Shown one piece after another: positions 14,801 through 64,000 of a stretch of DNA of 64,000 nt. The notes below the pieces were generated by a model, which saw only the letters and a program-made list of their open reading frames with translations, ran no database searches and had not been told where the DNA came from. This DNA comes from Paragordius varius (taxonomy: Eukaryota; Animalia; Nematomorpha). Both the position numbers and the translations under genes were made by a program. Each line of letters opens with the position of its first letter. The stretch's first letter is position 1. Location: the NCBI GenBank assembly GCA_964247055.1, contig OZ176058.1, positions 4,898,001-4,962,000 of the forward strand, written 5' to 3'.

Positions 14801-17800
14801 TGAAAGAAAACACATAATATATTGTTCGAAGGTGAATTTGGATTGTTTGAGCGTGGAAATTGTAAATGGTATATCTTAATATATTCAAAATATTACTTAA
14901 TGTTAAATAAAAATTAGTTATGTAAATTGTATCCACTCAATTATATATCATTTTAAAATGAAAATTCAATTAGATTATATGGGAAAATTTTCAAAGTTTG
15001 TAAAAGTATGGGGCTTGGTTGTCTTTTGAAGAAAAAATTATTTGTGTCTTTATATTTTTACGTTTTATATTTTATGTTAATACAATTTTTACTGTAATAT
15101 TTTCATGATTAACATTTGCTTTTGTTTTGGCTGTGGTTGGTTTATAATCCATGGTAGGGGTCGTATTGTATTGTTCATACAGTGTTTTAAATCTTTCAAT
15201 TTCTAAGTAAAATAAATTACAGTAAAATTATTTAACATTAAACTACAAATGGTTTTAAAACGCCACACAATTATTTTAAATTTTTTTAGACCATTTGCAT
15301 TTAAAGTTCTTAAACACTTCAAATTTGTCTTTAAACATTTCAGTTGAATATATTTATTAAATACATTATGAGTAAGTAAATATACAGTGCTAGAAAGTTA
15401 TTAATTATTGCCCCAAATAGTAAATACAACAAAGGGGCACTATTATTGGCTAATAATATTAAAAAGTGAAAAAAATAACTATAAGCCCCCTTTTTTGTAT
15501 TTACTATTTGGCAATATCTAATAACTTTCTAGCAATGTATATATATACTTACTCATACTGTATATTATATTTTAAAGGCAAAAAATGTAAAAATTAATAT
15601 ATATTTCTTCTAATAGTGTAATAGACTTTATATTGAAGTTTTTTTAAGTAAAAAATTACAGTTCTAATTATTGAATAAATAATGATTAAAATTACAAATA
15701 TTTCTAAGAAACTATGCATTTTTTTGGTTAAAAAATTTAAATAAATAAATTGTAAGTTAAAATTCCAAAAATCAAATAAAATACTTTCGCCTTTAAGAAA
15801 CCATAATTTTCAATATTTAAAACATAGAGATACTAAAAATGAAATGATAAAGACAAATGAAAAAAGGACAACAATTTTTTTTCCTTGAAGCGTTTTTTCA
15901 AAAGAATTTGTTTTAAAAAAAAATTTAGTTACTTATTCACTTTAATATTTCATAATTTTAATTTTAATCAATAAACTTGAAGGCACAGGCTATAAGATAA
16001 TTGGATTGACTTCGTCGAAAAGACAGGTCAAATCACACAATTGTTTAGTTGAAAAAGTTGTTTTATTACGTTTAAGTTGCATTTCTTGGAGCATTTTTCA
16101 AAAAAAATTGTTTTAAACCTCAAAAAATTAGTTATTTTAGAAACATTTTAAAAATTAATTTGAAAAAATTCTAAAATTTAAAGCAAAACCTTTAAGATAA
16201 ATGGGTTGACTTCGTCGAAAATACAAGGTAAGGTCACACAATTGTTTAGCTAGGAAAGCTGTTATATTACGTTAAAATGCATTTCTTGAGGCGTTTTTTC
16301 AACAGAATTTGTTTTAAAACTCAAAAAAAATTATTCTTTTAATGTTTCTAAATTTAAATTTCCAAACAGAAAACTTAAAAGCAAAACCTCTAAGATAAGT
16401 TAAACGAGAAAATTTAAGTGGATGGACTACGGCAAAAAGTCAGAATTAAGTCACACAATTGTTTGCATTTCTTGAAACTATTTTAGTTAAAATCAAAAAA
16501 ATTATTCTTTTAATGTTTCTAAATTTAAATTTTCAATTTCCAGAAAACTTTAAAGCAAAACCTTTAAGATAAGTGGATTGACTTCGTTGAAAAGATAAGG
16601 TTAAGTCACACAATTGTTTGACTAAAAAATGTTTTTTCTGCGTTTAAGTTGCATTTCTTAAGCGTTTTTTAACAGAATTTGTTTTAAAACTCAAAGAGTT
16701 GTAAAAAGATCCTGAATTTAATAAAGTTTTATTCACTTTGAAACATTTTCAAATTTTCAAAACCTTTAAGATAAGTGGATTGACTTTGTCGAAAAAACAA
16801 GGTTACATCACACAATTGTTTAGCTAGGAAAGTTGTTATATTGCGTTTGAGTTGCATTTCTTGAAGCGTTTTTTAACAGAATTTGTTGTAAAACTCAAAA
16901 AATTCAAAATTTCAATGCAAAACCTTAAAGGTAAGTGGATTGACGACGAAAAGACAAGGTTAAGTCACACAATTTTTTAACTGAAAAAGTTGATTTTGCG
17001 TTTAATTTTTACTTTTTTATACAGATTTTAATACTCAAAATATGAATCTTTTTCGCAATTTAATTTTTCAAAAACTCAAAAAATTCGAATTTCAAGGCAT
17101 TACCTTTAAGATAAGTGGATTGACTACGGCGAAAAGACAAGGTTAGGTCACACAATTGTTTAGCTAGAAACGTTGTAATATTGCGTTTAAGTTGAATTTC
17201 TTTAGGACTGTTTTTTTCTTCTGTATTCGTGTTATGTTTTTGATTATTTATGCGTTTGACTAGTGATTGACAATGTTGTAACATCTATACATATATTTAT
17301 ACCATTTATAATTCAAAACCCTTAAACAATGTAAATTCACCTTTGAAAATACTTTTAAAAACGTTTTTACCTGTAATTTTCAATAATTTACCTGAGTAAT
17401 TTGTTCACTCTTCTTTAGAATATCAAAATTATTGGGCACATTTGTTAATAAATCAAAAGGAATTATATGAAAAAAATTCAAAAAAGTTGTCTTAAGAGCT
17501 ATTTGATTATCTTTTTTATATATTTTTAACACATTAACATTTTTATTTTTAATTAACTTTGTAGTTTTTGAAAAAAACAATATATTTGACAATTTTCCCA
17601 AACAAAAAATTTCCGTTTTTTTATATATTTTTCAAATTTTTTCATAATACTTTTTAAAACCTTTTTATAATATCCTAAATTGAGTAATTTTATAAAAAAA
17701 AACTTTTTTTAGATATAAAGATGACCCATACAATATGCGTAACAATTCTCACAAAAATCTTAATAAATAGTCATTTTTTTATATTTTTTGATAATACTTA

Positions 17801-24669: not shown

Positions 24670-24980
24670 GAAATAAACCGCTTTTTCTGTTTCTATCAAT
24701 GTTAGATGTGATTTAAATAAAAAATTAGCGTTAATTTTACCCTTAAAATTAAACGAAGACGATATTTTGCAAAAATTTTATAAAATAAAAATGACGTCGA
24801 AGTAGTTTGACATGGAATTTTTTTATTTATTGATATTTTGGCATATTTATATAATTTATATTAGGATAGAAGCATAAATTTTAATTGGGATCTTTTCCTT
24901 TAGTAGTTTTTTAAAAATCCTAACTAAAGTTTAGTCAGGGTATTTAGATATCCCAATCGAATCGAAGTGTTGAACAAAAC
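24670..24980 (+). repeat. Family C dispersed repeat in the palindrome spacer
   Basis: Colinear with the reverse complement of 59320-59620 and with the 340-640 region. Confidence 0.6.
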
Positions 24981-29585: not shown

Positions 29586-32500
29586 TCAATGTTTTAACAC
29601 AATTTACATATCTATTTTTAAAAAATTAATTAAGTATGGTTATCTTTAAAATATAAAAAAACTATTTCATTTAATTTTTACGTGTTTTATCAGTAAAATT
29701 TCAATTTTAATATCAAGAATTTTTCAACTACTTATGAATCTCATCAAAAGGGGCTGGTAAAGCAAAATCATGGCAATCAACAAAATGGAAATTCAATAAT
29801 AGAAAATCAACAGAATAAAGAACCTAGATGGCTTGAAATTGTTAATGAGGTTTGTTTGTTGATATTATAATAATTTTACAGGTAAAAATTTGTAAATAAA
29901 GTAAAAAGATATTTATATTTTTGGTTATAACGACAAAATTAACTTGATTTTTTAAATGATTTATTATTTGTTTTATAAATCTATAACATTTATACCTCGA
30001 ATTTATTCTTGAACAATTTAAGTTCGCCCTTGAATTATTTTAATTCACCCCCTAATTCAAATTCACCCTTGAACAATTATTATTCACCCTTGAACAATTC
30101 AAATTCACCCTTTAACAATGTAAATTTACCTTTGAACTGTTAATATTCACCCTTTAACAATTCAAATCATACCCTAAAATTATTTATATTCTCCCTTTAA
30201 CAATTTAAATCTCACCCTAAAATTAATCAATTTTTAAATGAATATTAAAAATTATGTATAATTTTTATATTTTTTTTATTATTAGTTTGAAATACTAAAA
30301 TTTCGTTTAAAATTAGTAATATCATAATACTGAAAAAAATAATAAACTGATGGCTATAAAGAAATCCTAAAAACATATAGCTTATTTTTAGGAGGGGGAA
30401 TTTACAGTAAAAATTGAAGTTATACTATGGAAAAAAACGTGTAAAAATAAAAAGACAAATATTTTTTTCTAAAAAACAACCCCATACTTTTTAAAACTTA
30501 ATTAATTAAATGAAACACATTCTTTAAACCTGTAAAGTAAAATATAAAGAGATAAATATAAGGTAACACAATTAATTATATATATTTTACAATCGTAATT
30601 GAATGATTTTTATATAGAACTTAAGATTTGAAAAGTTTTTTTTGAAAAAAAATCTTGTCTTTATGTTTTTACGCTTTGTCCGTATAATTTCAATTATTAG
30701 GGTGAATTGTTTCAACAAAATATAAGATCTAAAAAATCTTTTGTCAAAATGTTTTAACATATTAACTTACAGTAAAAATTGAAATTATACGGACAAAATG
30801 TAAAAATATAAAGACATTTTTTTAAGACAACCATACTTTTTTAAACCTTAATTTATCCTATAAAAAAACATTTTAATTACAATCGTAAAATACATTTTTG
30901 ATTGTGTTACCAATTTACATTTCTATATTATATTTTGGAGTTTATAACAATAAGTTATATAAAAATCAAGAATAAAAAAGTATGGTTGTCTTTTAAGTTT
31001 TTTGTCTGTATATTTTCACGTTTTGTCCATAGTATAATTTCAATTTTTACTGTATCTTTTCTGGGGGCTGGAAATCCTAAATAAGGTTTGTTTGCCTTTT
31101 ATATTAGTTTTTCAGTAAAAATTTTAAAAAAAGTAAACTAAAAAGAGTTTAATAATCTTTTTTGGTAATAACGACAAAATTAATCAAAATTGCTACTAGT
31201 TTTTAATTTATTTATTAAAAGGCATGATTATGTTATAAAGCCATATATTTCGGATTACAGGTATTAATGATAATTCACCCTATACAATTTAAATTCTCCC
31301 TAACAAATAATTATGGGATGCAAAGACCGACTCCCACCTCCTCGCGGGGCATCCCGGGTAACGCTAACGGGAGCGGCACTGTTTGTAAAGAACAGTCAAT
31401 GAACATCAATCCACAAGGAGAAAAACTAGTGTGTGGGGCGTGGCGGAATTGAGATTGGCTGTCTCATTTTCTTACAAAATACCACAATGCCTGTATTCAC
31501 ACACATGGTTTTAAAGCGGGTTTATCTGGGCGCTATAACCAGCAGCCAGATGATAATAACGATAATATAAGTACTTAAAACGAAAGATGGAGTGGGAGCT
31601 TCCAAAGCCCAGAAAGGCACCTCCCTCGGCCGTAGACTTAAATCTACAAACGGATTGAGAGATTCGAAGTCTTTTCAGACACTCTCTAGCCTGGTACAGC
31701 GAATAAGGTACTCTCTCCTCCGAGTTAAGAGGTTGGCTATAAGGGCATATAGTCTATAAAAATCAAGCCTCATTACTTTTACCATGTTCAACAGCGAAAT
31801 AATAATGAATAAATACTACTTATAAAAGCGTCTTTGAAACTTTATATTATATATTTTTATACTGCATAATAATAATAATTATATTTATAATACATCTACG
31901 GAAAAGTGAAATGTTACCTGAGAAAAAATCATTTAATATTAAAAATAATAACTTTAAATTTGGCACATGGAATGTCGGAACTCTTGTTGGAAAAGCTTGG
32001 ATGATAATAAATGCGATTAAAGAACAAAAGCTTGACATATGTTGTTTACAAGAAACTCGTTTTAAAAACGGAGGTAATTATCAACATGAGGGTTTTACAC
32101 TGTATTATGAAGGAGGAAAATCAGGGAAATCAGGGGTAGCAATAGCCATAAACGATCAGATAAAAGATAATATAATTGACATTACACGTCACAGCGACAG
32201 AATTATTCAAATGCGAGTGGCTCTCAATAATACCACCCTTAACATACTATCCATCTATACCCCTCAACAGGGTCAAAATGAAACTACCAAACAGGAATTT
32301 TGGAATCAGCTTTATCAGATCGCACAAAATGTTCCCACAACTGACATACTTCTGATCGGCGGAGATTTTAATGGACACATTGGAATGCACGCTGATGGTT
32401 ATGAAGGTATACACGGTGGAGTAGGTATTGGCTCTCGCAACAAAGAGGGCGAAACCCTCTTGGAATTCTGCAGAGCCGCAAACTTATTGATTTGCAACAC

Positions 32501-35050
32501 ACACTTCTGTAAAAAACCTAGCCAAATCCACACATATAAAAGCGGAAATCACACATCGCAAATAGATTTTGTGTTGCTGAACCAACAACTTAGAAAAATT
32601 ATAACCAACTTTAAAACTTATGAATATGATACACAACATAAACTAATAGTTGCTTTTTTAATAATAAATAAGAACCGACCTAGCCCTAAAAAATTGCCAC
32701 AACTTAACGTTGCAAAACTTAATGATCCTAAAACAAAGCATCAATACATCAACCAAATTACACCTGAACTAAAACATTCCCCTAACAACGTTCATGACGG
32801 CTGGGAGCATCTCAAAAACACCCTTCTCTCAAACGTTTCCAAAATCTGCGGAAGAAAACGTACCAAAACAAAATCTCAATGGTGGTGGCAAAGCGATATT
32901 AAACCCTTATTGAATGAGAAAAGAGATGCCTTTAAGAAATGGAAAGCTTCTAAACATGATGATGACAAACATTTTTACATAATGGTTAAAAAAAGAGTAA
33001 AGAAAATAATAGCTGACAAAATGAATGAAAGATGTTTGGAAATGGCCAAAAAACTTGAGGGAGAAATTAAAAACTTAAAAGTTTTTAAAACACTAAAAAA
33101 TATTAATAATAATAAAAAAGATATTCGGGTAGTGAAGGCCATAAAAGATAAAAATAACAACACAGTTACTGACACTCTTAGCATTCAAAATGTATGGACA
33201 CAATACATGCAAAATACACTGAATTTCCAGCATTCAAATGTCGAGATCCCAAACTTACCTCCAGTTATTGGGCCACCCCCAATTATTACTCCAGAAGATG
33301 TGAGCTTAGCCATGCAAAAATGTAAAATCAATAAGGCATCTGGTCCAACGGAAATTAAAACTGAAATGTACAAAAATATTCCTGAAGCAATTACCTATTT
33401 CACAGAGCTATTTAATCTGATTATAATGGAGGAAAAAATCCCGAACGACTGGAACCAAAGTGTCATAATTCCAATATATAAAAACAAAGGCGACATGCTC
33501 AACTGCGCCTCCTACAGACCATTAAAATTACTTGAACACGCAACCAAATTATTCGAAATAATTATAGAAAAGAAAATACGTCAGCTTTGCTCGATTGACG
33601 AAAACCAATTCGGTTTCCAACAGGGGATCAGCACCTCTGACGCCATATTCATTCTTAGAAGGCTACAAGAGAACTACAGATGCAAAAACAAAACCCTATA
33701 TCACATCTTTATTGATTTAAGCCGTGCATTCGACTGCATCCCGCGGTCCATGATCACATTTGCGTTACGAAAAAAAGAAATCCCGGAATGGATAATAAGA
33801 ATAATAAACTTACTATATGAGAACACCACTAGTTGCGTGAGAACTCCCGTGGGTGATACCAACCAATTTCCAGTAACTGTCGGACTACACCAGGGCTCCA
33901 TCCTCAGTCCATTACTATTTATCATCATTATGGATGTAATAACTGATAATATAAAAACAGGTTTACCTTTTGAGATGATGTACGCTGACGACATAATACT
34001 AACAGCCACCAGCGAAACAGACATTATCAATAAATATAACCTCTGGAAATCTACTTTAGAAAAATTTGGCCTCAAAATTAACACAGATAAAACAAAGGCT
34101 TTAATAACAGGCTCACCGGTACCTGTAATAAAATTCCCTTGCTCCATTTGTCACTCTGAAGTGAAACTTAATTCCATCAAATGCACTAAATGCCAGCTGT
34201 GGGTCCATAAAAAGTGCTCACAAATTAAAGGAAGTTTATTGGGAATTGAAAATTTTATATGTAAAGCTTGTGCAACACCAGATATAAACCCAAATAATCC
34301 CACACAAACCACCTACCTTCCAACTACAAACATCGAAATAGTAAACAAGTACAATTACCTGGGTGACACAATAGCAGCTGATATGAATATTAAAAACGCC
34401 ATAACAACACGGACACATCAGGCTTGGGCCAAATTTCATCAACTCAAGTATATAATGAAACACAAACACATTTCAAACCCAAACAAGGGCAAAATCTACA
34501 CGATTGCCATTCGCCCTGCCCTCACCTATGCTAGCGAATGTTGGCCCTTAAACCAAACTAATGAAAATAAATTATGTGACATAGAAAGAAAAATCCTCAA
34601 CTCATGCCTCACCAATCAGTATCACAATGATAAAACAAATAATAATAAAAGCATACATAATCTGTTTCATATCGCACCTATGTCTTCTTTTCTCAGAGCA
34701 AATCGTCTCAGATACTGGGGTCACATTGAACGCTCAAATAGTTGGATTAACAAAATTAGATCCTTTCATCCGAACGGCAATTTAAAACGAGGCAGACCAT
34801 ACCATGATTGGGAAAAAACACTCAGCAATGACTTACACTTAACTCAATTGAACAAAGACGATTGTCTCGATCGCAAGCTATTTCGCTCAAGAATTTGGAA
34901 GCTGGCACATGCTGGACAAACAACGACTTGATGATGATGATAACAAATAATTATGTGTTTTCGGGCAGCTAATATAACTCATCATTAATAAGAATTATAT
35001 TATGTGGCTTTTTACAGTAATATCTTTATTTCAAACGAAGTTTCATTTTT

Positions 35051-35088
<38 letters not shown>

Positions 35089-35329
35089 TAATCTATAATC
35101 TTAAAAACACGTAATTTATATTGGGGTGAATTCGAATTGTTTAAGGGTAATTTTGAATTGTTTAGTAAATTTAAATCGTTTAAGGAGATAAATTCGAAAT
35201 ATAAATGGTATATTATATTCATAGTGTTAACATTTTTTACATGGATAAACTTTTTACACAATTTTTTTCGAAACCGATCTCAACACTAATTGAGCTTTGA
35301 TTTCTCTTTTTAGAATTTTTAATTCAAAT

Positions 35330-35372
<43 letters not shown>

Positions 35373-38300
35373 TTTTCTCTATTAACTCAGGTAAACTATG
35401 GAATTGAAAAAATTGGTCAAAAAATTATTGAATTAGATGCGTTACATGTTAAGAAAGTTTGTATGCCTACTTTGGATGATACCACTTATAATACCAATAA
35501 TAATAATCAGGTAAATGTCACCAATAATCCTAATCTTGACATTCAAAAGAAAAGTGAACAAATAACTCAGGTAAATTTTTGAAAATTACAGGTAAAAATC
35601 TTTTAAGAATTTTTTAAAATCAAAAAATATGAAAAATTACAAAAAAAGTTGAAAAAAATTGATAAATATTTAGATTTTTTTTTATATTTCTTACATATAT
35701 TGTATTGGTTATCTTTATATCTAAAAAATTTTAAAAAATTTCATAGTTAAAAATTAAAATGATAAATCTGTTCTTAAGGACAAATATTTTTTTGATTTTT
35801 TTTCATTGTTTTATTTTCCACTAAAATAAATGTCACCAATAATAATTTCGACATTGAAGAAGAGTAAACAAATAATTCAGGTAAATACAAGATTACAGGT
35901 AAAAATGTTTTAAAGAGTGATCAAAGGTGAATTATTGTTTAGGGTAAATTTAAACTGTAAATGGTATATATATATGTATAGATGTTACAACATTGTCAAT
36001 CACTAGTCAAATGCATAAATAATCAAAAACAACTTCAACTCAACAATAACACGAATACAGAAGAAAAAAACAGCCCTAGGGAAATTCAACTTAAACGTAA
36101 TATTACAACTTTTCTAGCTCGACAATTGTGTGACCTTACCTTGTCTTTTCGTCGAAGTCAATCCACTTACCTTAAAGGTTTTGCTTTGAAATTTTCGCGT
36201 TAAAATTTTTTTTAAACATTAAAAAAATAATTTTTTGATTTTAACTAAAATAGCTTTCAAGAAACATTTAAACGCAATAAAACAACCTTATTAGCTAAGT
36301 TGTGTGATTTACCCTTGAGCTTTCGACAAAGTTAATCCACTCAAATTTTCTCGTTTAACTTATCTTAAAGGTTTTGCTTTAAAGTTTTCTGGAAATTGAA
36401 ATTTTGAAAATGTTTTAAAGTGTTAAAATAGAGTTTTAAAACTAAGTCTGTTGAAAAAACCCTTTAAGAAACGCAACTTAAACATTATATGACTTAATTT
36501 ATCTTTTCGACGAAGTCAATCCACTTATCTTAAAGGTTTTGCTTTTGGAGTTTTTAAATTTTCAAAGTTTGAGTTTTACCTTGAGTTTTTGGCGAAGTCA
36601 ATCCACTTATCTTAAAAGTTTTGCCTTCAAATTTTGAAATTTTTTGAGTTTTAAAACAAATTCTGTTGAAAAACGCTTAAAAATTGCAACTTAAACGCAA
36701 TATAACAACTTTCCTAGCTAAACAATTGTGTGACCTAATCTTGTCTTTTCGCCGAAGTCAATCCACTTACCTTAAAGGTTTTGCTTTATAATTTTTTATT
36801 TTTTCAAAGTTTGAGTTTTTAAACAATTCTGTTAAAAATCGCTTCAAGAAATGCAACTTAAACGTAATATAACAACTTTTTTAGCTAAACAATTGTGTGA
36901 CTTAACCTTGTCTTTTCGACGTAGTCAATCCACTTATCTTAAAGGTTTTGCTTTGAAATTTTAAATGTTTTTGAGTTTTAAAACAAAATCTGTTGAAAAA
37001 ACGCTTTAAGAAATACAACTCAAACGCAATATAACAACGTTTCTAGCTAAACAATTGTGTGACTTAACCTTGTCTTTTCGTCGAAGTCAATCCACTTACC
37101 TTAAAGGTTTTGCTTTTAAGTTTTCGCGTTTAAATTTTTTTGAGTTTTGAAACTGTTGAAAAAACGCTTTAAGAATTTCAACTTAAACGCAATATAACAA
37201 CTTTCCTAGCTAAACAATTGTGTGACTTAACCTTGTCTTTTCGACGAAGTCAATCCACTTACCTTAAAGGTTTTTTGAAATTTTGAATTTTCAAAGTTTG
37301 AAAGCGTTTCAAAGTGAATAATTAACTAATTTTTGGGTTTTAAAACAAATTCTTAATAAAAACGCTTAAGAAATGCCATTTAAACGCAAAAAAAACAATT
37401 TTTTTGTTAAACAATTGTGTGACCAAATCTTGTCTTTTCGTCGAATCCACTTATCTTAAAGGTTTTGCTTTGAATTTTTAATTTTTTAATGCGAAAAAGA
37501 TTCATGTTTGTATTAAAATTTGTATAAAAAAGTGAAACTTAAACGCAATATTACAACGTTTCTAGCTCGACAATTGTGTGACTTAACCTTGTCCTTTCGC
37601 CGTAGTCAATCCACTTATCTTAAAGGTTTTGCTTTAAAGTTTTCTGGAAATTGATTTTTTGAAAATGTTTTAAAGTGTTAAAATAGAGTTTTAAAACTAA
37701 GTCTGTTGAAAAAACGCGCCAAGAAATGCAACTTAAACGCAATATAACATTCCTAACTAAACAATTTTGTGAATTAACCTTGACTTTTCATCTAAGTCAA
37801 TCCATTACCTTAAAGGTTTTGCTTTCAAGTTTTCTGGTTTTAAATTGAAATTTTGAAGTATTAAAATAATTGATAAAACAAAATTCTTTATAAAAACGCT
37901 TGAAGAAAACCAACTTAAACGTAATATAACTTTTTAAGTTAAACAATTTCGTCGAAGTTAATCCACTTATCTTAAAGGTTTTGCTATTAAGTTTCTGGAA
38001 AAATTTAAATTTAGAAACATAAAAAAATAATTTTTTTAAGTTTTAAAACAAATCTGTTAACAAACGCTTCAAGAAATGCGATTTAACATTATATGACTTG
38101 ATTTTGTCTTTTCGCCGAAGTTAATCCATTCACCTTAAGGTTTTGCTTTAAAGTTATGAAATGTTTTAAAGTGAATAAAAAAAATAATTTTTTGTCTTTA
38201 AAACAAATTTTGCCTAAAAACCTTTTAAGAAATGCAACTTAAACGTAATATAACAACTTTCCTAGCTAAACAATTGTGTGACCTAACCTTGTCTTTTCGA

Positions 38301-41300
38301 CGAAGTCAATCCACTTATCAATGCCTTGAAATTTTAAATTTTTTGAGTTTTAAAAATTCTGTTGAAAAACGCTTCAAGATATGCATCTTAAACGTAATAA
38401 AACAAATTTTTTTAGTTAAAAATTGTGTGATCTAATTTTGAGTTTTCGACAAAGTCAATCCACTTACCTTAAATTTTCTGGAAATCGAAATTTTGAATTT
38501 CTTTGAGTTTACTAATTTTTTGAGTTTTAAAACAAAATCTGTTGAAAAACGCTTTAAAATTGCAACTCAAACGTAACATTACAACTTTCCTAGCTCGACA
38601 ATTGTGTGATTTAACCTTGTCTTTTCGCCAAGTCAATCCACTTATCTTAAATGTTTTAAATTGAAATTTTGAATTTTTTGAGAAATTCTTCATAAAAACG
38701 CTTCAAGAAATGCAACTTAAACGTAATATATCAAATTTTGCAGTTAAACAATTGTGTGATTTAATCTTGAGTTTTCGACGAAGTCAATCATCTTATCTTA
38801 AAGTTTTGCCTAGTTTTCTGAAAATTAAAATGTTGATATATTTCAAAGTGTTTAAAATAGAGTTTTAAAACATCTGTTGAAAAACGCTTCAAAAAATGCA
38901 ACTTAACGCAAAATGCAACTTTTTCAGCCAAAAAATTATGTAATTTACCCTTGAGTTTTCGCCGAATTCAATCCACTTACCTTAGAAATTCTGCTTTGAA
39001 ATTTTGAATTTTCAAAGATTGAAAGCGTTTCAAAGTGAATAATTAACTAATTTTTGGGTTTTAAAACAAATTCTTAATAAAAACGCTTGAAGAAATGCCA
39101 CTTAAACGTAATAAAACAAATTTCCTAGCGAAACAATTATGTGACTTAATTCTGTCTTTTCTCCGAGTAAATCCACTTATAAAGGTTTTGCTTTAAAGTT
39201 TTTGAATGTTACAAAGTTTGAGTTATAAAACAAATTCTGTTGAAAAATGCTTCAAGAAATGCTATTTAAACGTAAAAAAACATTTTTTTAGTCAAACAAT
39301 TGTGTGATATATCTTTGAGTTTTCGGCAGAGTCAATCCACTTATCTTAAAGGTTATTTTTGAAGTTTGAAATGTTTCAGAGCGAATAAAATAACTATTTT
39401 TTTTAAAACAAAATCTGTTGAAAAATGCTTTAAGAAAAAAAAATATATGTCCTCTTTTCATGTGTCATTTTAAGTTTTAAAAATCAAAAATTATGGTTTC
39501 TTATGGGCAAAAAATATTTTATTATATAATTTGCATTTGGTTTCTAAAATTTTAACATAAAATATATTTAATATTAAATTATCATCAAAAAAATGTATGG
39601 CGTATTAGAAATATTTGTTAATCATTATATTCAATAATTGTTAAATTTTTTCTTTATCTTTTTAATTTTTAACTAAAATTTTTTACTTAAAAAAACTTCA
39701 ATATAAAGTGTAAAAAATTACATTTGTAAAAGAATTTATATTAATTTTTACATTTTTTTCTTTATAAAATATAATAATATACATTGCTAGAAAGTTATTA
39801 ATTATTGCCAAATAGTAAATACAAAAAAGGGGGCTTATAGTTAATTTTTTCACTTACTAATAGTCAATAATAGTGCCCCCTTTGTTGTATTTACAATTTG
39901 GTAATATTTAATAACTTTCTAACAATATATATACTTACTTACTCATGTATTTATTAAATATATCAAACTTGAAATGTTCAAAGGACCAAATTTGAAGTGT
40001 TTAAGGACACTCTTTAAGTACAAATGGTATAATTTGAATAAAAAAATAAATCTTAAAAACATTTGTAGTTTAATGTTAAAATAATTTTAATTGTAATTTA
40101 TTTTATAACTTAGAAATTGAAAGATTTAAAACACTGTATGAGCAATACAATACGACCCCCACCATGGATTATAAAACATCCACAGCCAAAGCATATGTTA
40201 ATGAAAATATCACAGTAAAAATTGTATTAATTAAAAAGATAAAGACAATAAATAATTTTTCTTCAAAAGACAACCAACCATACTTTTACAAACTTTAAAA
40301 TCTTTCACATATAATCTACATGAAATTTTATTTAAAAATGATATATAATTGAGTGGATTAACACAATTTACATAACTAATCTTTATTTAACAATAAGTAA
40401 TATTTTGAATATATTAAGGTATACCATTTACAATTTCCACGCTCAAACAATCCAAATTCACCCTCGAACAATATATTATGTGTTTTCTTTCAAGCTAACA
40501 TAACTCATCATTTATATGATATATATTTTTTGGACATAGTTTCATATTAATTTTAAACAGAATTTCATGTTTTGAAAAATATTAAATAATATAGGTAATT
40601 TTTAATCTTAAACCAAAACACATACTTTGTTTTAAGGTGAATTCGAAATGATAACAAGGAATTCGAATTGTTCGAGGCTTTTGTATTGCTAACAAGGGTG
40701 ATTTTGAATTGTTCAAGGGTGATTTTGAATTTTTCACAAGGGTGAATTTGATTTGTTCGTTCAAGGGTGAATTTAAATAGTTCAAGACTGAATTTGATTG
40801 TTCAAGGGTGATTTTGAATTGTTTGAGGGTGATATTTAATAGTTCAAATGTGAATTCGAACAAGGGTGAATTCGAATAGTTCAAATGAATTTGAATTGTT
40901 CACAGGGTGAATTTGATTTGTAAATGGTATATTAATTAAAAAGTATGGAGTTGGTTGTCTTTTAGAAATAAAAATATTCTTTATATTTTTACCTATTTTA
41001 TACTTTTAATTTTTACTGAATATTAATAAAAAAACTCTTTTCAGGAACACGATGAAACTACCAATACAAAAATTTTGTGGGAAAATAAATTGACTTTGCA
41101 TTCTGAACAACACCCCACCGATAATGTTATAATGTCTGAAATTGATATAATAAACCATCAACAATCAAATGATAATTCCTTAAACTCCAATTTTGAACGT
41201 ATTCAAAAAGTTAGTTTATATTATATAAATATTGAATACTTTTTTTAATTTATAATTGCGAGTATCAAATTAAAACATTTTATTTTGTAAATTTTTTAGT

Positions 41301-43938: not shown

Positions 43939-44344
43939 TATATTATTCCTATTTATTTATTTCTTTATTTGATTCATATATGTTGTTATATACTACAAAT
44001 GAAATAAATACAAAACTTTAAATGTTTTTATCTCGAATATTTTTGTTTTGTATATCTAAAACTACATTTCATTTTTTGAATTCATTATGATATTGAAATA
44101 CTTTAATTTTACAGTAATATTTAAAATTATAAAGACAGAACATAATAAGTTAAAACTAATTTGGTTTATCTTATATTAAATAAAGGCAGACGATTTTGTT
44201 TTTGTAGTTTTCTATTCTACATAAACTTTTAAATTATATGATCTATTAAATTACCATAAACGAAATTATAAAGTAAACACATCAAAACAGTTGGATTTTA
44301 CTTGGTTGAACAGTAAAAATTAATATAAATTAAAACGGTCATTT

Positions 44345-45155
44345 ACACAGCAGAGCGTCTTATGGCAAACTTTTATGCATTTTCTCGTTGGCTTTTTTAG
44401 TTTTACTCCTGTGCGTGGCATTAATTATTTTGAAATTATAATATATTCTTATTTATTTATTTGATGTTGTTATACAGTAAAAATGAAATAAATACAAAAA
44501 ACTTGAAATGTAAATATCTTGAATATTTCTGTTTTGTATATCAAAATCTACATCATTTTTGAAATTATTATATTCAAATAATTGAATGTTGTGTTGTATT
44601 ATGGTAAAATTTGAAATTTTATGGACAAAACGTGAAAATATAAATACAAATATTTTCTAAATGACAACCATACTTTTTAAAACTTAAATGTTTCCCATAT
44701 GAGCTACTTAGTTACAATTGTAAAATATAGAATAGATTGTGTTAGAATTATATATCTCTATTTCACATTTTGTCGTTTAAAACAATAAATTATATCGATA
44801 TAAATCTAGATTTCAAAAGTATGGTTGTCTTTTAGAAAAAATAGTCTTTATATTTTTACGTTTTGTCCATAGTTATAATTTCAGTTTTTACTGTATTTAA
44901 AATTATAAAGACAGGACATAAAAAGTTTAAACTAATTTATTTATCTTTTGCTCAAGTAAGCAGACGACATTTTTGTATATGTTTTCGATTCTACTTATAT
45001 ATTTAAATTATAACAAAATTAAAAACCAAATATTACTTGAAATCGAAATTGCAAACTGGCCAATTGCACAACATAGCTTTTATACATTTATTCATTTTCT
45101 TGCTAGCTTTTTTAATGTTACTTTTCTGGTCATGGCATTAATTATTTGAAAACTA
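44345..45155 (+). repeat. Echoes of the STX16 last-exon 3' end and stop
   Basis: 44348-44441 is a near-exact copy of 43848-43938. A degenerate copy lies at ~45070-45155. Confidence 0.8.
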
Positions 45156-46902
45156 TAAATTTTCTCATTTATTTATAATTTTTTGTGATGGTATTAACAT
45201 TTAAATACTGAAAAATAACATTTGTTTCCTAATTATAATCAATCTTTTTAATTGGTATTAAATTGCGCTGTAAATTGAACCAATATATCTAGTAAATTAA
45301 ATAATTGATATTTGGAAAAAATTACATAAAATTGTCTTTTAAAAGAAAATAGATTTTAAAATGCTTTATATGTAGATTATTATAATTTTCTGATTTTTTT
45401 AGGTGTAAAGTCCGACTTTCACAAGGGCTTCTCATGCTCTATTACATTAAAAATTGAAATTATACTACGGACAAAACGTAAAAAGACAAAGACAATTTTT
45501 TTTTCAAAGACAGCCACCATACTTTTTTAACCTGCCTTAATTTATCCTATAAAAATAATTATTTAATTGCAATCATTAAATACATTCCTAATTGATTCTG
45601 TATTATCAATTAATAGGTCTATATTATACTTTGCAGTTTAAAACAATGAGTTATATTTAAATTAATCAAGAGACAAAAAGAATGGTTGTGTTTTATAAAA
45701 AAAATTTGTCTTTATATTTTTACGTTTTGTCCATCCGTATAATTTCAATTATTACTGTAAATATTACAATGCCTGCAGTCCACACAATCGAGAAAGCGGT
45801 AACTGGCGATTATAACCAGAGCTCATAAAACGACTCAGAAATAATGGACAGTAAATTATGAAAACAAATTATTAAAAATTAAAGATTATTGAACATAATA
45901 ACATATTAAGAGTACAGTAAAATTTGAAATTATACGGACAAAACCTATAAATAAAAAGACAAATATTTTTTTTCTAAAAGACAACCAACTTTTTTAAACT
46001 ATTGTAAAGTATAAATGATATATATATTTATTGGTGACACAATCAATTATATATTTTATAGTTGTAATTATAACATATGAAAAAAATTAAAGTTTATTAA
46101 AGTATGGTTGTCTTAATATTTGTCCGTATATTTTTGCTTTTTGTCCGTAAAATTTCAGTTTTTACTGTATGTTTTTTTAAACTTTTATCTCTCTATAAAA
46201 ATTTATTCACTATATTCCTTGCACAATTAAATAATATCAAAGTTTAATAAAATATAAATAGTATAAAATTTAAATTATGCACTCAAAATGTAAAAACATA
46301 CGATAATTTTTTCAAGAGTGCCGTTTTTAAAAACATTTTTCCAAATATATCTTATTGTTTAAAATTTCAAACAATTAAATATACAATTTTTATTTAATAT
46401 TATATAAAAATTAAGGGGCAAAAAGTACATATGTCTCTTGAAACATAAAATTTCGTTTTTATGATTTAGAGTAAAAAGTGAAACTATACGGACAAAAAGT
46501 AAAAATATATGGACAAATATTTTTTTCTAAAAGATAACCATACTTTTATAAACCGTATTTTTCCCATATAAATTATATAATTCCAATTATAAAATATATA
46601 ATTTATTGTGTCACCAATATACATATCAATTTTATATCAATTTAAAACAATGATTTATATTTTTAAAAGGAAGTTTAAAAAAGTATGGATGTTGTCTTTT
46701 AGAAAAAAATCATTATCTTTATATTTTTAAGTTTCCACAGTATAATTTCAATTTTTACTGTATTATTTTTTAGTTATTCTACATAAATTACACTACACGT
46801 AATTTTTAATTGAGAATTTTTAGATACTATGTTAATCATTTAAATAATATTTATTGTTGGTTATATTTAATAACTACTTAAATATATGTTATAAAATCAA
46901 CC

Positions 46903-62099: not shown

Positions 62100-64000
62100 G
62101 TGTTTTTAAAAAAAATAATTTTTTGAACTTTTCAAAATTTTTAAATTTTTTTAAACTTTTTTTTGAAAAATTAAATAAATTTGAAAAAATTGAATAAATT
62201 TGAAAAAATTGTTTAAAATCCAAAAAATGATAATATTATAATTTTGAAAAAATGTGTGTTAATACTGTTAAAATTGAAAAATTTACTTTAAAATATAGTA
62301 AAATTTAAAAAAATCTAAAATTTGTGTTTAATTACTGTTAAAAATTGAATAAATAATATATTTTTTATTGAAATTTGAAAAATAATTTGCTTAAAATACT
62401 GTAAAAATTGTAAAATATGAAAAAAATCTTTGTTTATATGTTGTGGGTAAGTGTTCAAAAACCCCTGAAACCTAATAAACCCAGGTTTTTAATTTAATTT
62501 TGGGTTTTGAATTTTTTTTAATTTTTTTTAAAAAAAATGTAAAAAATAATAACAAATTTGTTTAAAATACGGTAAAAATTGAAAAAACTTGAAATACTGT
62601 TAAAATTTAAAAAATTAGGTTTTTTATATTAAAATTAAACAAAATATGTTTAAATACAGTAAAATTTTTAAAATTTATATTAAAATTCTAAAAAAATGTG
62701 TTTAAATACAGTAAAAATTGAAAAAATATAAAATAATATGTTTAAATACTGTTAAAATTAAAAAAATTTCAAAAATCTATTTTAAAATACAGTAAAAATT
62801 GTAAGGTATGAAAAAATAAAAAATTATTCAATCATTACACTTTACATGTTGTGGGCAAGTCTTTAAAAACCCCTGAAACATAATACACCCAGGTTTTTAA
62901 TTAAATTAATTTTTTGGTTTTTTTAACTTTTTTGAAACTTTTTGAATTTTTTTTTTGAAAAAAATAGTTTAAAATACTGTTAAAAATTGAACAAACTAAC
63001 AACAATAGTTTAAAATATAGTAAAATTAATAATATTTTAAGCTAGATTTTTAAAATGTAAAAAAATTCAAAAAACTGTTATAGTGTTAAAATTTATAAAT
63101 TATGTTTTTTATATTGAAATTAAACAAAATGTGTTAAAATAGTGTTTAAAAAACTAATTTTTTATATTATAATTTGAAAAAATTGGAAAAATTAACTTTA
63201 AAATACAGTAAAAATTATAAGATATAAAAAAATAAAAATTATTCAATTATTACACTTTACATGTTGGGGTTAACTATTCAGAAACCTCTTAAACCTAATA
63301 CACCCAGGTTTTTAATTAATTTTTTATTTTTTTTTAAACTTTTTGAAACTTTTTTCCAAAAAAATGCAAAAAAATGAAAAAAATAGAGTTATAACCGAAA
63401 AAATTATGTTTTTTATATTAAAATTTCAAAAATATTGAAAAAATTCCTTTATACAGTAAAATTTTTAAAATTTATATTAAAATTTCAAAAAAATATGTTT
63501 AAATGCTGTTAAAATTGAATTTTCTTTAAAATACAGTAAAAATTGAAAAAATTAAACAATAAAATATGTTTAAATACTGTTAAAACTGATAAAATTAATA
63601 TTTTTTAAATTAAAATTCAAAAAAAAAATGAAAAAATTTACTTTAAAATACAGTAAAAATTGAAAAAATATAATTATTATATTTTATATTAAAAAAAAAT
63701 TTACTTTAAAATACAGTAAAAATTCTAAGATATGAAAAAATAAAAATTTATTCAATCATTACACTTTACATGTTGGGGTTAACTATTCAAAAACCTCTGA
63801 AACCTAATATACCTAGGTTTTTTTCTAAGTTTTATAAATTTTTAGTTTTTTTAAAACTTTTTTGAACTTTTTTTAAAAAATGAAAAAAAAATGAAATCTA
63901 AAAAAATAGCTTGAACTGTTAAAATTTAAAAATTATGTATTTTATATTTAAATTCAAAAAAATGAAAAAATTTACTTTAAAATACAGTAAAAATTTTAAG
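62100..64000 (+). repeat. RNF121 exon-3 3'-end plus donor echo array (~385-510 bp period)
   Basis: Copies ending 'aaacctaatacacccag|gt' at 62484, 62892, 63307 and 63816, separated by AT-rich spacers rich in 'tacagtaaaaatt'. Confidence 0.88.

Follow-up and report, generated by a model that had tools for sequence, protein, structure and literature searches.

Intronic copies of an exon 5 tail in a Paragordius varius syntaxin-16-like gene include a subset with a signature of protein-level selection

Copies of exon ends that lie within introns are usually dismissed as decaying junk. The locus described here raises the question of why a subset of such copies should bear a clear and durable signature of selection at the protein level. 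It lies in a 64,000-nucleotide stretch of the nematomorph Paragordius varius (GenBank assembly GCA_964247055.1, contig OZ176058.1, positions 4,898,001 to 4,962,000 of the forward strand), which is referred to in its entirety as the window and which is AT-rich, with a G+C content of 23%. An intact syntaxin-16-like (STX16) gene is found on each arm of a large inverted duplication, and intron 5 of the right-hand gene carries a tandem array of copies, or units, of the end of exon 5. An earlier note, made from the sequence alone, had proposed that these units vary almost only at synonymous sites. This was found to be correct for six or seven "clean" right-hand units and incorrect for the other 12 right-hand units and for the units of the left-hand gene. 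The best-supported reading of this pattern is that a protein-level filter has acted on the clean units themselves.

The inverted duplication spans window positions 131-23925 (- strand) and 26000-59800 (+ strand), is centred near position 24960 and includes other genes common to both arms. Non-coding identity between the arms is approximately 83%. The right-hand STX16 gene was reconstructed as nine exons, and left-arm counterparts were identified for all nine. Because the differences between left and right exons sit mostly at third codon positions (18, 13 and 48 differences at first, second and third positions, respectively), both STX16 paralogs look functional. Outside of the exon 5 tail, the proportion of synonymous differences between the paralogs (pS) is 0.17 and that of non-synonymous differences (pN) is 0.035. 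The frame and peptide of exon 5 (..IQLKRNITTFLARQLCDLTLSFRRSQSTYLK) agree with the Hc helix of syntaxin 16; a protein search with the 65-residue exon 5 peptide gave zero matches among 1.84 billion representative proteins. The copied part of right exon 5 is its tail at 36084-36177 (31 codons plus G), which terminates in AAAG/GT at 36177 (a slash marks the splice junction). The head of the exon (35982-36083) is unrepeated and lacks an internal donor, and the units correspond to codons ~34-65 only.

The array was mapped using blastn with the exon tail, plus Tandem Repeats Finder. The 3.9-kb intron 5 of right-hand STX16 contains 19 copies of the tail on the + strand (36268-39351) with a period of 162-182 bp, in agreement with the approximately 19 copies ending in AAAG/GT counted in the earlier note, and the array has lengthened this intron by ~3.2 kb. 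Behind exon 5 of the inverted left paralog are six further copies on the - strand (17008-15990). Each unit spans the splice junction in register, from the last ~31 codons of exon 5 through the donor to the first part of the intron. Homology between units and exon reaches upstream past the conserved core into a low-complexity loop, where the units bear indels. Individual units, called here by their starting coordinates, are listed in Table 1.

The units fall into two classes. The clean class was defined as six gap-free right-hand units with at least 89% identity to a live exon, plus a seventh with a single 1-nt deletion. All five of the units that had been named as intact beforehand belong here, being gap-free and encoding the exon peptide, as does a further unit at 38232-38317. 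The clean units encode the exon peptide exactly, the only exceptions being a K/R difference at codon 13 and a single T>I change. Relative to the unit consensus, the six gap-free units show 12 synonymous and three non-synonymous single-site variants (P = 2.5e-5), with the K/R codon accounting for two of the three, and all seven units show 14 synonymous and four non-synonymous variants (P = 8.8e-6). A random mutation would be expected to be synonymous with a probability of 0.27 (using the mutational spectrum of the decayed units) or 0.23 (using a uniform spectrum), and when the same variants were read in the other two frames as a control, only ~20% were synonymous. Protein-level signatures among the units include the Leu CTA/TTA, Lys/Arg AAA/CGA and Ser TCT/AGT switches. 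The clean cores are free of gaps, save for the one 1-nt deletion in unit 38563, whereas indels and substitutions abound in their flanks.

The remaining units, 12 in the right-hand array together with those of the left-hand array, form the decayed class, which shows 27 synonymous versus 55 non-synonymous variants. None of the six left-hand units is intact, each having non-synonymous changes, a stop or indels. The earlier note had looked to a neutral distribution over codon positions as evidence against its proposal; such a distribution is seen in the decayed units, where the non-consensus fraction is near-uniform (0.14, 0.16 and 0.19 at the three positions), and is not seen in the clean units. 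Two technical causes of the synonymous excess were considered and rejected. Base-composition bias is not responsible, as G and C occur at every codon position of the unit and the control frames lack the excess. Ascertainment is not responsible either, as the choice of units by identity and gaps is codon-blind, and the same choice applied to simulated units gives a synonymous share of only ~0.3.

Silent changes in the live exons themselves might also produce such an excess. In the six gap-free units, 11 of the 15 variants match a state of the left or the right live exon. When the variants matching either live exon were removed from the set of seven clean units, nine synonymous and two non-synonymous variants remained (P = 2e-4), compared with ratios of 2:9 and 1:10 in the control frames. 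Changes in the true exon are thus insufficient to explain the excess, and a codon-level filter has operated on the variation that is private to the units.

Pairwise Nei-Gojobori counts of pS and pN were used to compare the ages of the two classes. Clean units differ from each other with a pS of 0.28 and a pN of 0.014 (ratio 0.05), and gap-free decayed units with a pS of 0.27 and a pN of 0.18 (ratio 0.67). As silent divergence is shared by both classes (0.27-0.28), they are equally old at silent sites, and as the pS of the clean units exceeds that between the paralogs (0.17), the clean units predate the paralog split. Their low pN can therefore not be attributed to a young age, which is ruled out both by the equal pS of the two classes and by the diverged flanks. 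An apparent excess of divergence at silent sites over spacers was rejected as an artefact of gap-rich alignment. Taken with the synonymous excess, the pN/pS of 0.05 points to purifying selection on the encoded peptide of the clean units.

Two side observations bear on the history of the units. First, the live exon 5 tails (36084-36177 and 17197-17104) differ at 6.5 of 19.8 silent sites (0.33), approximately twice the value for the rest of the gene (P ~0.04-0.10), as would be expected if the live tails had been replaced from an old pool of units. Second, a sub-family of decayed units (36268, 36576, 38381, 38709, 38895 and 39258) has in common a TCT to AGT/AGC Ser-to-Ser switch as well as GAT, TTA and ATC states. 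Because this switch takes two steps, its presence throughout the sub-family indicates that the founder, too, passed a coding filter before decaying.

Exchange between the units and the coding position is real. A spacer motif (37491-37505 and 17042-17056) is present once per arm. Its left copy comes after the live exon, whereas its right copy comes after a decayed unit (37373-37461) that is 1.3 kb into the intron. In a collinear alignment of the arms, the region of this unit likewise corresponds to the region of the left live exon tail. One of two events must therefore have taken place: the left gene took up a unit as its live tail, or the right gene turned a formerly live tail into an intronic copy. 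The motif that starts intron 5 in the left gene has a single further occurrence, behind unit 38232. Right exon 5 is identical to unit 37013 from codon 19 onward, and the homology runs into the intron as far as a shared CGCG spacer, with 3-4 differences in that part. Unit 37536 has a pS of 0.13 to the left exon (synonymous divergence, dS, of 0.14), which makes it closer to that exon than the live exons are to each other. The proposal that this unit is a mixture of right-exon and left-exon states was borne out: it combines right-exon CGA with left-exon CGC, ACG, CGC, CGT and TAT. Unit cores and flanks have separate histories.

The suggestion that units cycle into the coding position by unequal crossover or gene conversion is therefore upheld as a process, on the evidence of the unique spacer, the intron-start motif and the shared tract. 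It leaves the filter unexplained, as simulations of exchange gave synonymous shares of at most 0.6. Diversification of the expressed protein by conversion is unsupported, as the clean units encode one peptide save for the K/R and T/I differences.

Models without selection on the units were examined in three ways. First, a general bound was considered: an unselected copy decays everywhere and a live exon changes silently only, so that the synonymous share cannot exceed ~2S/(2S+N) (S, synonymous; N, non-synonymous), or roughly 0.4. Models in which units are snapshots of the exon or are overwritten by it thus need a per-site N difference that is at least about half of S, and the observed value is about one-twentieth. 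Second, neutral decay of snapshots was simulated, followed by a codon-blind pick of the seven units nearest to the exon. The median synonymous share was 0.29-0.32, and the observed 0.78 was reached in none of ~2600 runs. Third, conversion was modelled among 19 free units and two exons accepting silent change alone, using homology-dependent 30-nt tracts, a single tract length and homology threshold, and intensities of 0 to 4000 events per sequence per substitution per site. In 520 simulations, mean synonymous shares were 0.27-0.41, with a maximum of 0.6 when at least 12 variants were present. Simple neutral explanations are rejected.

The history that best accommodates these results would begin with a tandem duplication across the exon 5/intron 5 border, which would have founded the array earlier than the inverted duplication that produced the two STX16 paralogs. 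Most units would be dead and decaying neutrally, while six or seven right-hand units would have been under purifying selection on the Hc-helix peptide throughout and would be translated now, or would have been until recently. Unequal crossover and short gene-conversion tracts would shuffle cores among the units and both live tails, with places being swapped occasionally. The simplest route to translation would be for units to be spliced in frame between exons 5 and 6 as cassette exons of 93-96 nt, so that every cassette included would lengthen the protein by one more 32-residue helix segment. We infer that translation is the filter and that cassette splicing is the route. That a subset of the units is, or recently was, translated, in the simplest form as cassette exons, is a tentative conclusion drawn from the sequence, which we regard as plausible though short of probable.

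The cassette geometry that had been described for 36849-36944 (YAAG/AA...AAAG/GT, 96 nt, in frame, with an acceptor like that of exon 3) is indeed present there. It is found also at 37011-37106 and 37174-37269, and in a 93-nt version at 37533-37625. Each of the units within 36849-37269 is an intact 96-nt AG...GT frame. The cassettes run from phase 1 to phase 1, fitting the end of exon 5 (AAA G/) and the start of exon 6; their acceptor resembles the acceptor of exon 3 and their donor is the same as the live exon 5 donor. An AG, a GT and an intact frame occur together in four of the seven clean units, and it is to this extent that the geometry fits the proposal of spliced cassettes. An internal start codon (ATG in most units, ATT in the exon) was also considered as a route to translation and found no support, as it is kept in just two of the six gap-free clean units.

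Several observations weigh against translation of the units as cassettes. First, the splice signals are retained regardless of whether a unit is clean or dead (AG in ~20 and GT in ~19 of the 25 units). As they are independent of coding intactness, frame-broken units near the exon should be spliced in with the same frequency as clean ones. Second, three of the seven clean units are unfit as in-frame cassettes: unit 36687 lacks an AG and is preceded, three codons upstream, by a stop; the donor of unit 38232 has been deleted; and unit 38563 is both frameshifted and without an AG. Third, a clean unit is absent from the left paralog's array. Fourth, there is no evident reason why extra copies of the helix should retain the sequence of the original. 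Fifth, there is no transcript support, as the RNA-labelled sequencing runs X3-X6 are without any STX16 exon, even at 80% likeness; the runs filed as RNA (X3-X7) may come from another strain or organism than the assembly. Runs X1 and X2, whose library kind is not on record, cover the intron array at even depth and are genomic-looking. Finally, a similar pattern occurs at a second gene in the window, where it does not fit splicing. The tail of an RNF121-like exon (exon end near 62100) has four echoes at 62433-63824 (+ strand), with differences from the exon of [3,2,2], [4,4,4], [0,0,6] and [0,2,5] at the three codon positions; these are small numbers. The first two echoes listed have decayed evenly. 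In the cleanest one, all six differences are third-position changes, and a stop lies four codons upstream of it with no AG between.

An explanation that dispenses with translation would be indifferent to splice sites and could extend to the echoes of other genes. It holds that untranslated units exchange with the live tail and that chromosomes bearing damaged, exchange-competent units are weakly selected against, while units too diverged to recombine drop out and decay. The exchange on which it depends is demonstrated by the unique spacer, which makes unit 37373 the ortholog of the left live tail, as well as by the left intron-start motif behind unit 38232 and by the tract that right exon 5 and unit 37013 share into the intron. 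The match of most clean-unit variants (11 of 15) to states of the two live exons is in keeping with it, and a homology threshold for exchange would account for there being two classes. However, indirect selection of this kind would be expected to have a coefficient of about the exchange rate, and a pS of 0.28 would imply exchange at about the mutation rate, which would be far too weak unless the population were enormous. The simulations of exchange with protected exons and unselected units likewise gave shares of only 0.27-0.41, and the left array is unprotected. We consider this explanation unlikely. The wider proposition that the clean units were never translated and are codon-clean solely through recombination with the live exon, as partners or as a reserve, is judged to be decidedly unlikely.

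Alternatively, the clean units could be recent imports from several functional tails that differ silently, located in further STX16 paralogs or in deeply diverged alleles. The clean cores are mosaics in which a third set of states appears alongside those of the left and right exons, and the histories of core and flank are uncoupled, both of which would be expected of imports; the raised silent divergence between the left and right tails (0.33, versus 0.17 for the rest of the gene) may be read in the same way. Against this, the live exons in the window number only two, and the third set of states together with the private silent changes would require at least four further selected lineages. Deeply diverged alleles are not apparent, as the contigs of runs X1 and X2 contain no base differences and two indel variants over 3.8 kb, and this near-identity suggests that the sampled individual is not hyperdiverse. 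An import origin is therefore very doubtful.

The proposal that units are serial snapshots, each frozen at birth, with silent differences arising from later changes in the live exon, is highly improbable as the sole cause: ATA/ATT, TTC/TTT and CGA/CGY do separate most units from both exons, and the clean consensus is just mildly surprising under it (P ~0.03-0.09, by our own estimate), but the variation between units is itself silent, the clean units are as old as the decayed ones at silent sites, and the synonymous share of 0.78 was never reached in simulation.

The consequences depend on whether the units are spliced in. If they are, then the number of Hc-helix repeats in syntaxin 16 would vary in this animal, and any gene model that omits the array would be incorrect. 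If they are not, then selection would reach DNA that is not translated into protein through its recombination with the gene, and the reading of pseudo-exons and repeat-filled introns would change. Either way, the array records that live tails and intronic copies have exchanged positions, and this gives exon turnover a concrete route.

Elsewhere in the window, the final STX16 exon is echoed twice downstream of the gene, at 44325-44460 and 45041-45190 (+ strand), the echoed part being its transmembrane end and stop codon plus the beginning of the 3' region. The first echo is young, with one change in its last ~100 nt, and has one state in common with the left paralog exon; it was considered as a test case and set aside as too young to inform. 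The right paralog alone has, in its intron 3 at 31911-34931 (+ strand), an intact 1006-residue open reading frame (ORF) of an RTE-type non-LTR (long terminal repeat) retrotransposon, with endonuclease, reverse transcriptase and PHD finger domains and a best database identity of 35%. Tandem repeats of 21-23 bp (GGGTGAATTTGAATTGTTCAA-like) are found in the introns flanking the exon 5 region (35124-35198 and 40693-40921). Similar copies are present in the left arm and the depth of these repeats in genomic runs is very high; they are probably a dispersed repeat.

Table 1. Exon 5, its intronic units and associated STX16 features, in window coordinates.
Feature	Position	Strand	Remarks
Live exon 5, right STX16 paralog	35982..36177	+	ORF, peptide, splice sites, frame; conserved with left paralog, differences mostly at third positions
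Three decayed/partial units adjoining exon 5	36268-36341, 36484-36535, 36576-36616	+	Stops, indels or truncation; donors retained
Clean unit	36687..36777	+	Peptide intact but for one T>I; without AG acceptor; in-frame TAA three codons upstream
Three successive clean units	36849..37269	+	Cores 36851-36944, 37013-37106, 37177-37269; spacers ~66 nt
Decayed unit	37373..37461	+	5-nt deletion, ~21% diverged; positional ortholog of left live exon tail
Clean unit	37533..37625	+	93 nt in frame, different AG; mainly left-exon states plus right-exon CGA
Decayed units	37726-37815, 37911-37977 (24-nt deletion), 38088-38138 (partial)	+	
Clean unit	38232..38317	+	Donor lost through 8-nt deletion; followed by left-paralog intron-start motif
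Near-clean unit	38563..38651	+	1-nt deletion in codon 23/24; without AG
Decayed units	38381-38473, 38710-38803, 38896-38984, 39095-39184, 39259-39351	+	Many in TCT>AGT sub-family
Exon 6	40114..40214	+	Phase-1 acceptor TTAG/AA; joining partner of exon 5 donor or any unit donor
Left paralog	15990..17284	-	Live exon 5 17284-17104 and six-unit array 17008-15990

The array resembles several known systems without matching any of them. Through tandem exon duplication, genes acquire alternative exons, which are often mutually exclusive and some of which are unannotated (PMC9013439). Like these, the units are head-to-tail coding copies within a gene, with acceptor and donor of the same phase and conserved coding sequence. 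They differ in that each unit joins just the latter half of an exon to the beginning of an intron, which would allow addition only and no swap; not being complete exons, they do not form a mutually exclusive exon cluster. In addition, the copies here encode the same peptide, are mostly dead yet keep splice signals, and their inclusion in mRNA is a prediction. In the literature, tandem exon duplication has been described generally, and no account of junction-spanning arrays under selection was found.

A second comparison is with silent donor cassettes for gene conversion, such as the chicken pseudo-V arrays, the trypanosome VSG pseudogenes and Neisseria pilS. Both involve partial, non-expressed copies beside an expressed copy, shared mosaic tracts, and donors with open frames. 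Those systems diversify a protein, whereas the clean copies here encode one peptide, so that diversification would bring no evident benefit, and we know of no dedicated conversion machinery for the STX16 locus. Concerted evolution of tandem repeats is similar in that cores are shuffled and partly homogenised while flanks diverge. However, that process is codon-blind, and simulations of it with protected exons fail to give the observed bias.

There is also a structural likeness to the AGGT duplication model, in which introns are gained or grow through tandem duplication across a splice junction and the extra copies are predicted to be neutral. As in that model, the unit here consists of an exon end, a donor and an intron start, and the intron has grown by ~3.2 kb. 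In contrast to it, a subset of the copies has a pN/pS of 0.05 rather than the ratio of neutral decay.

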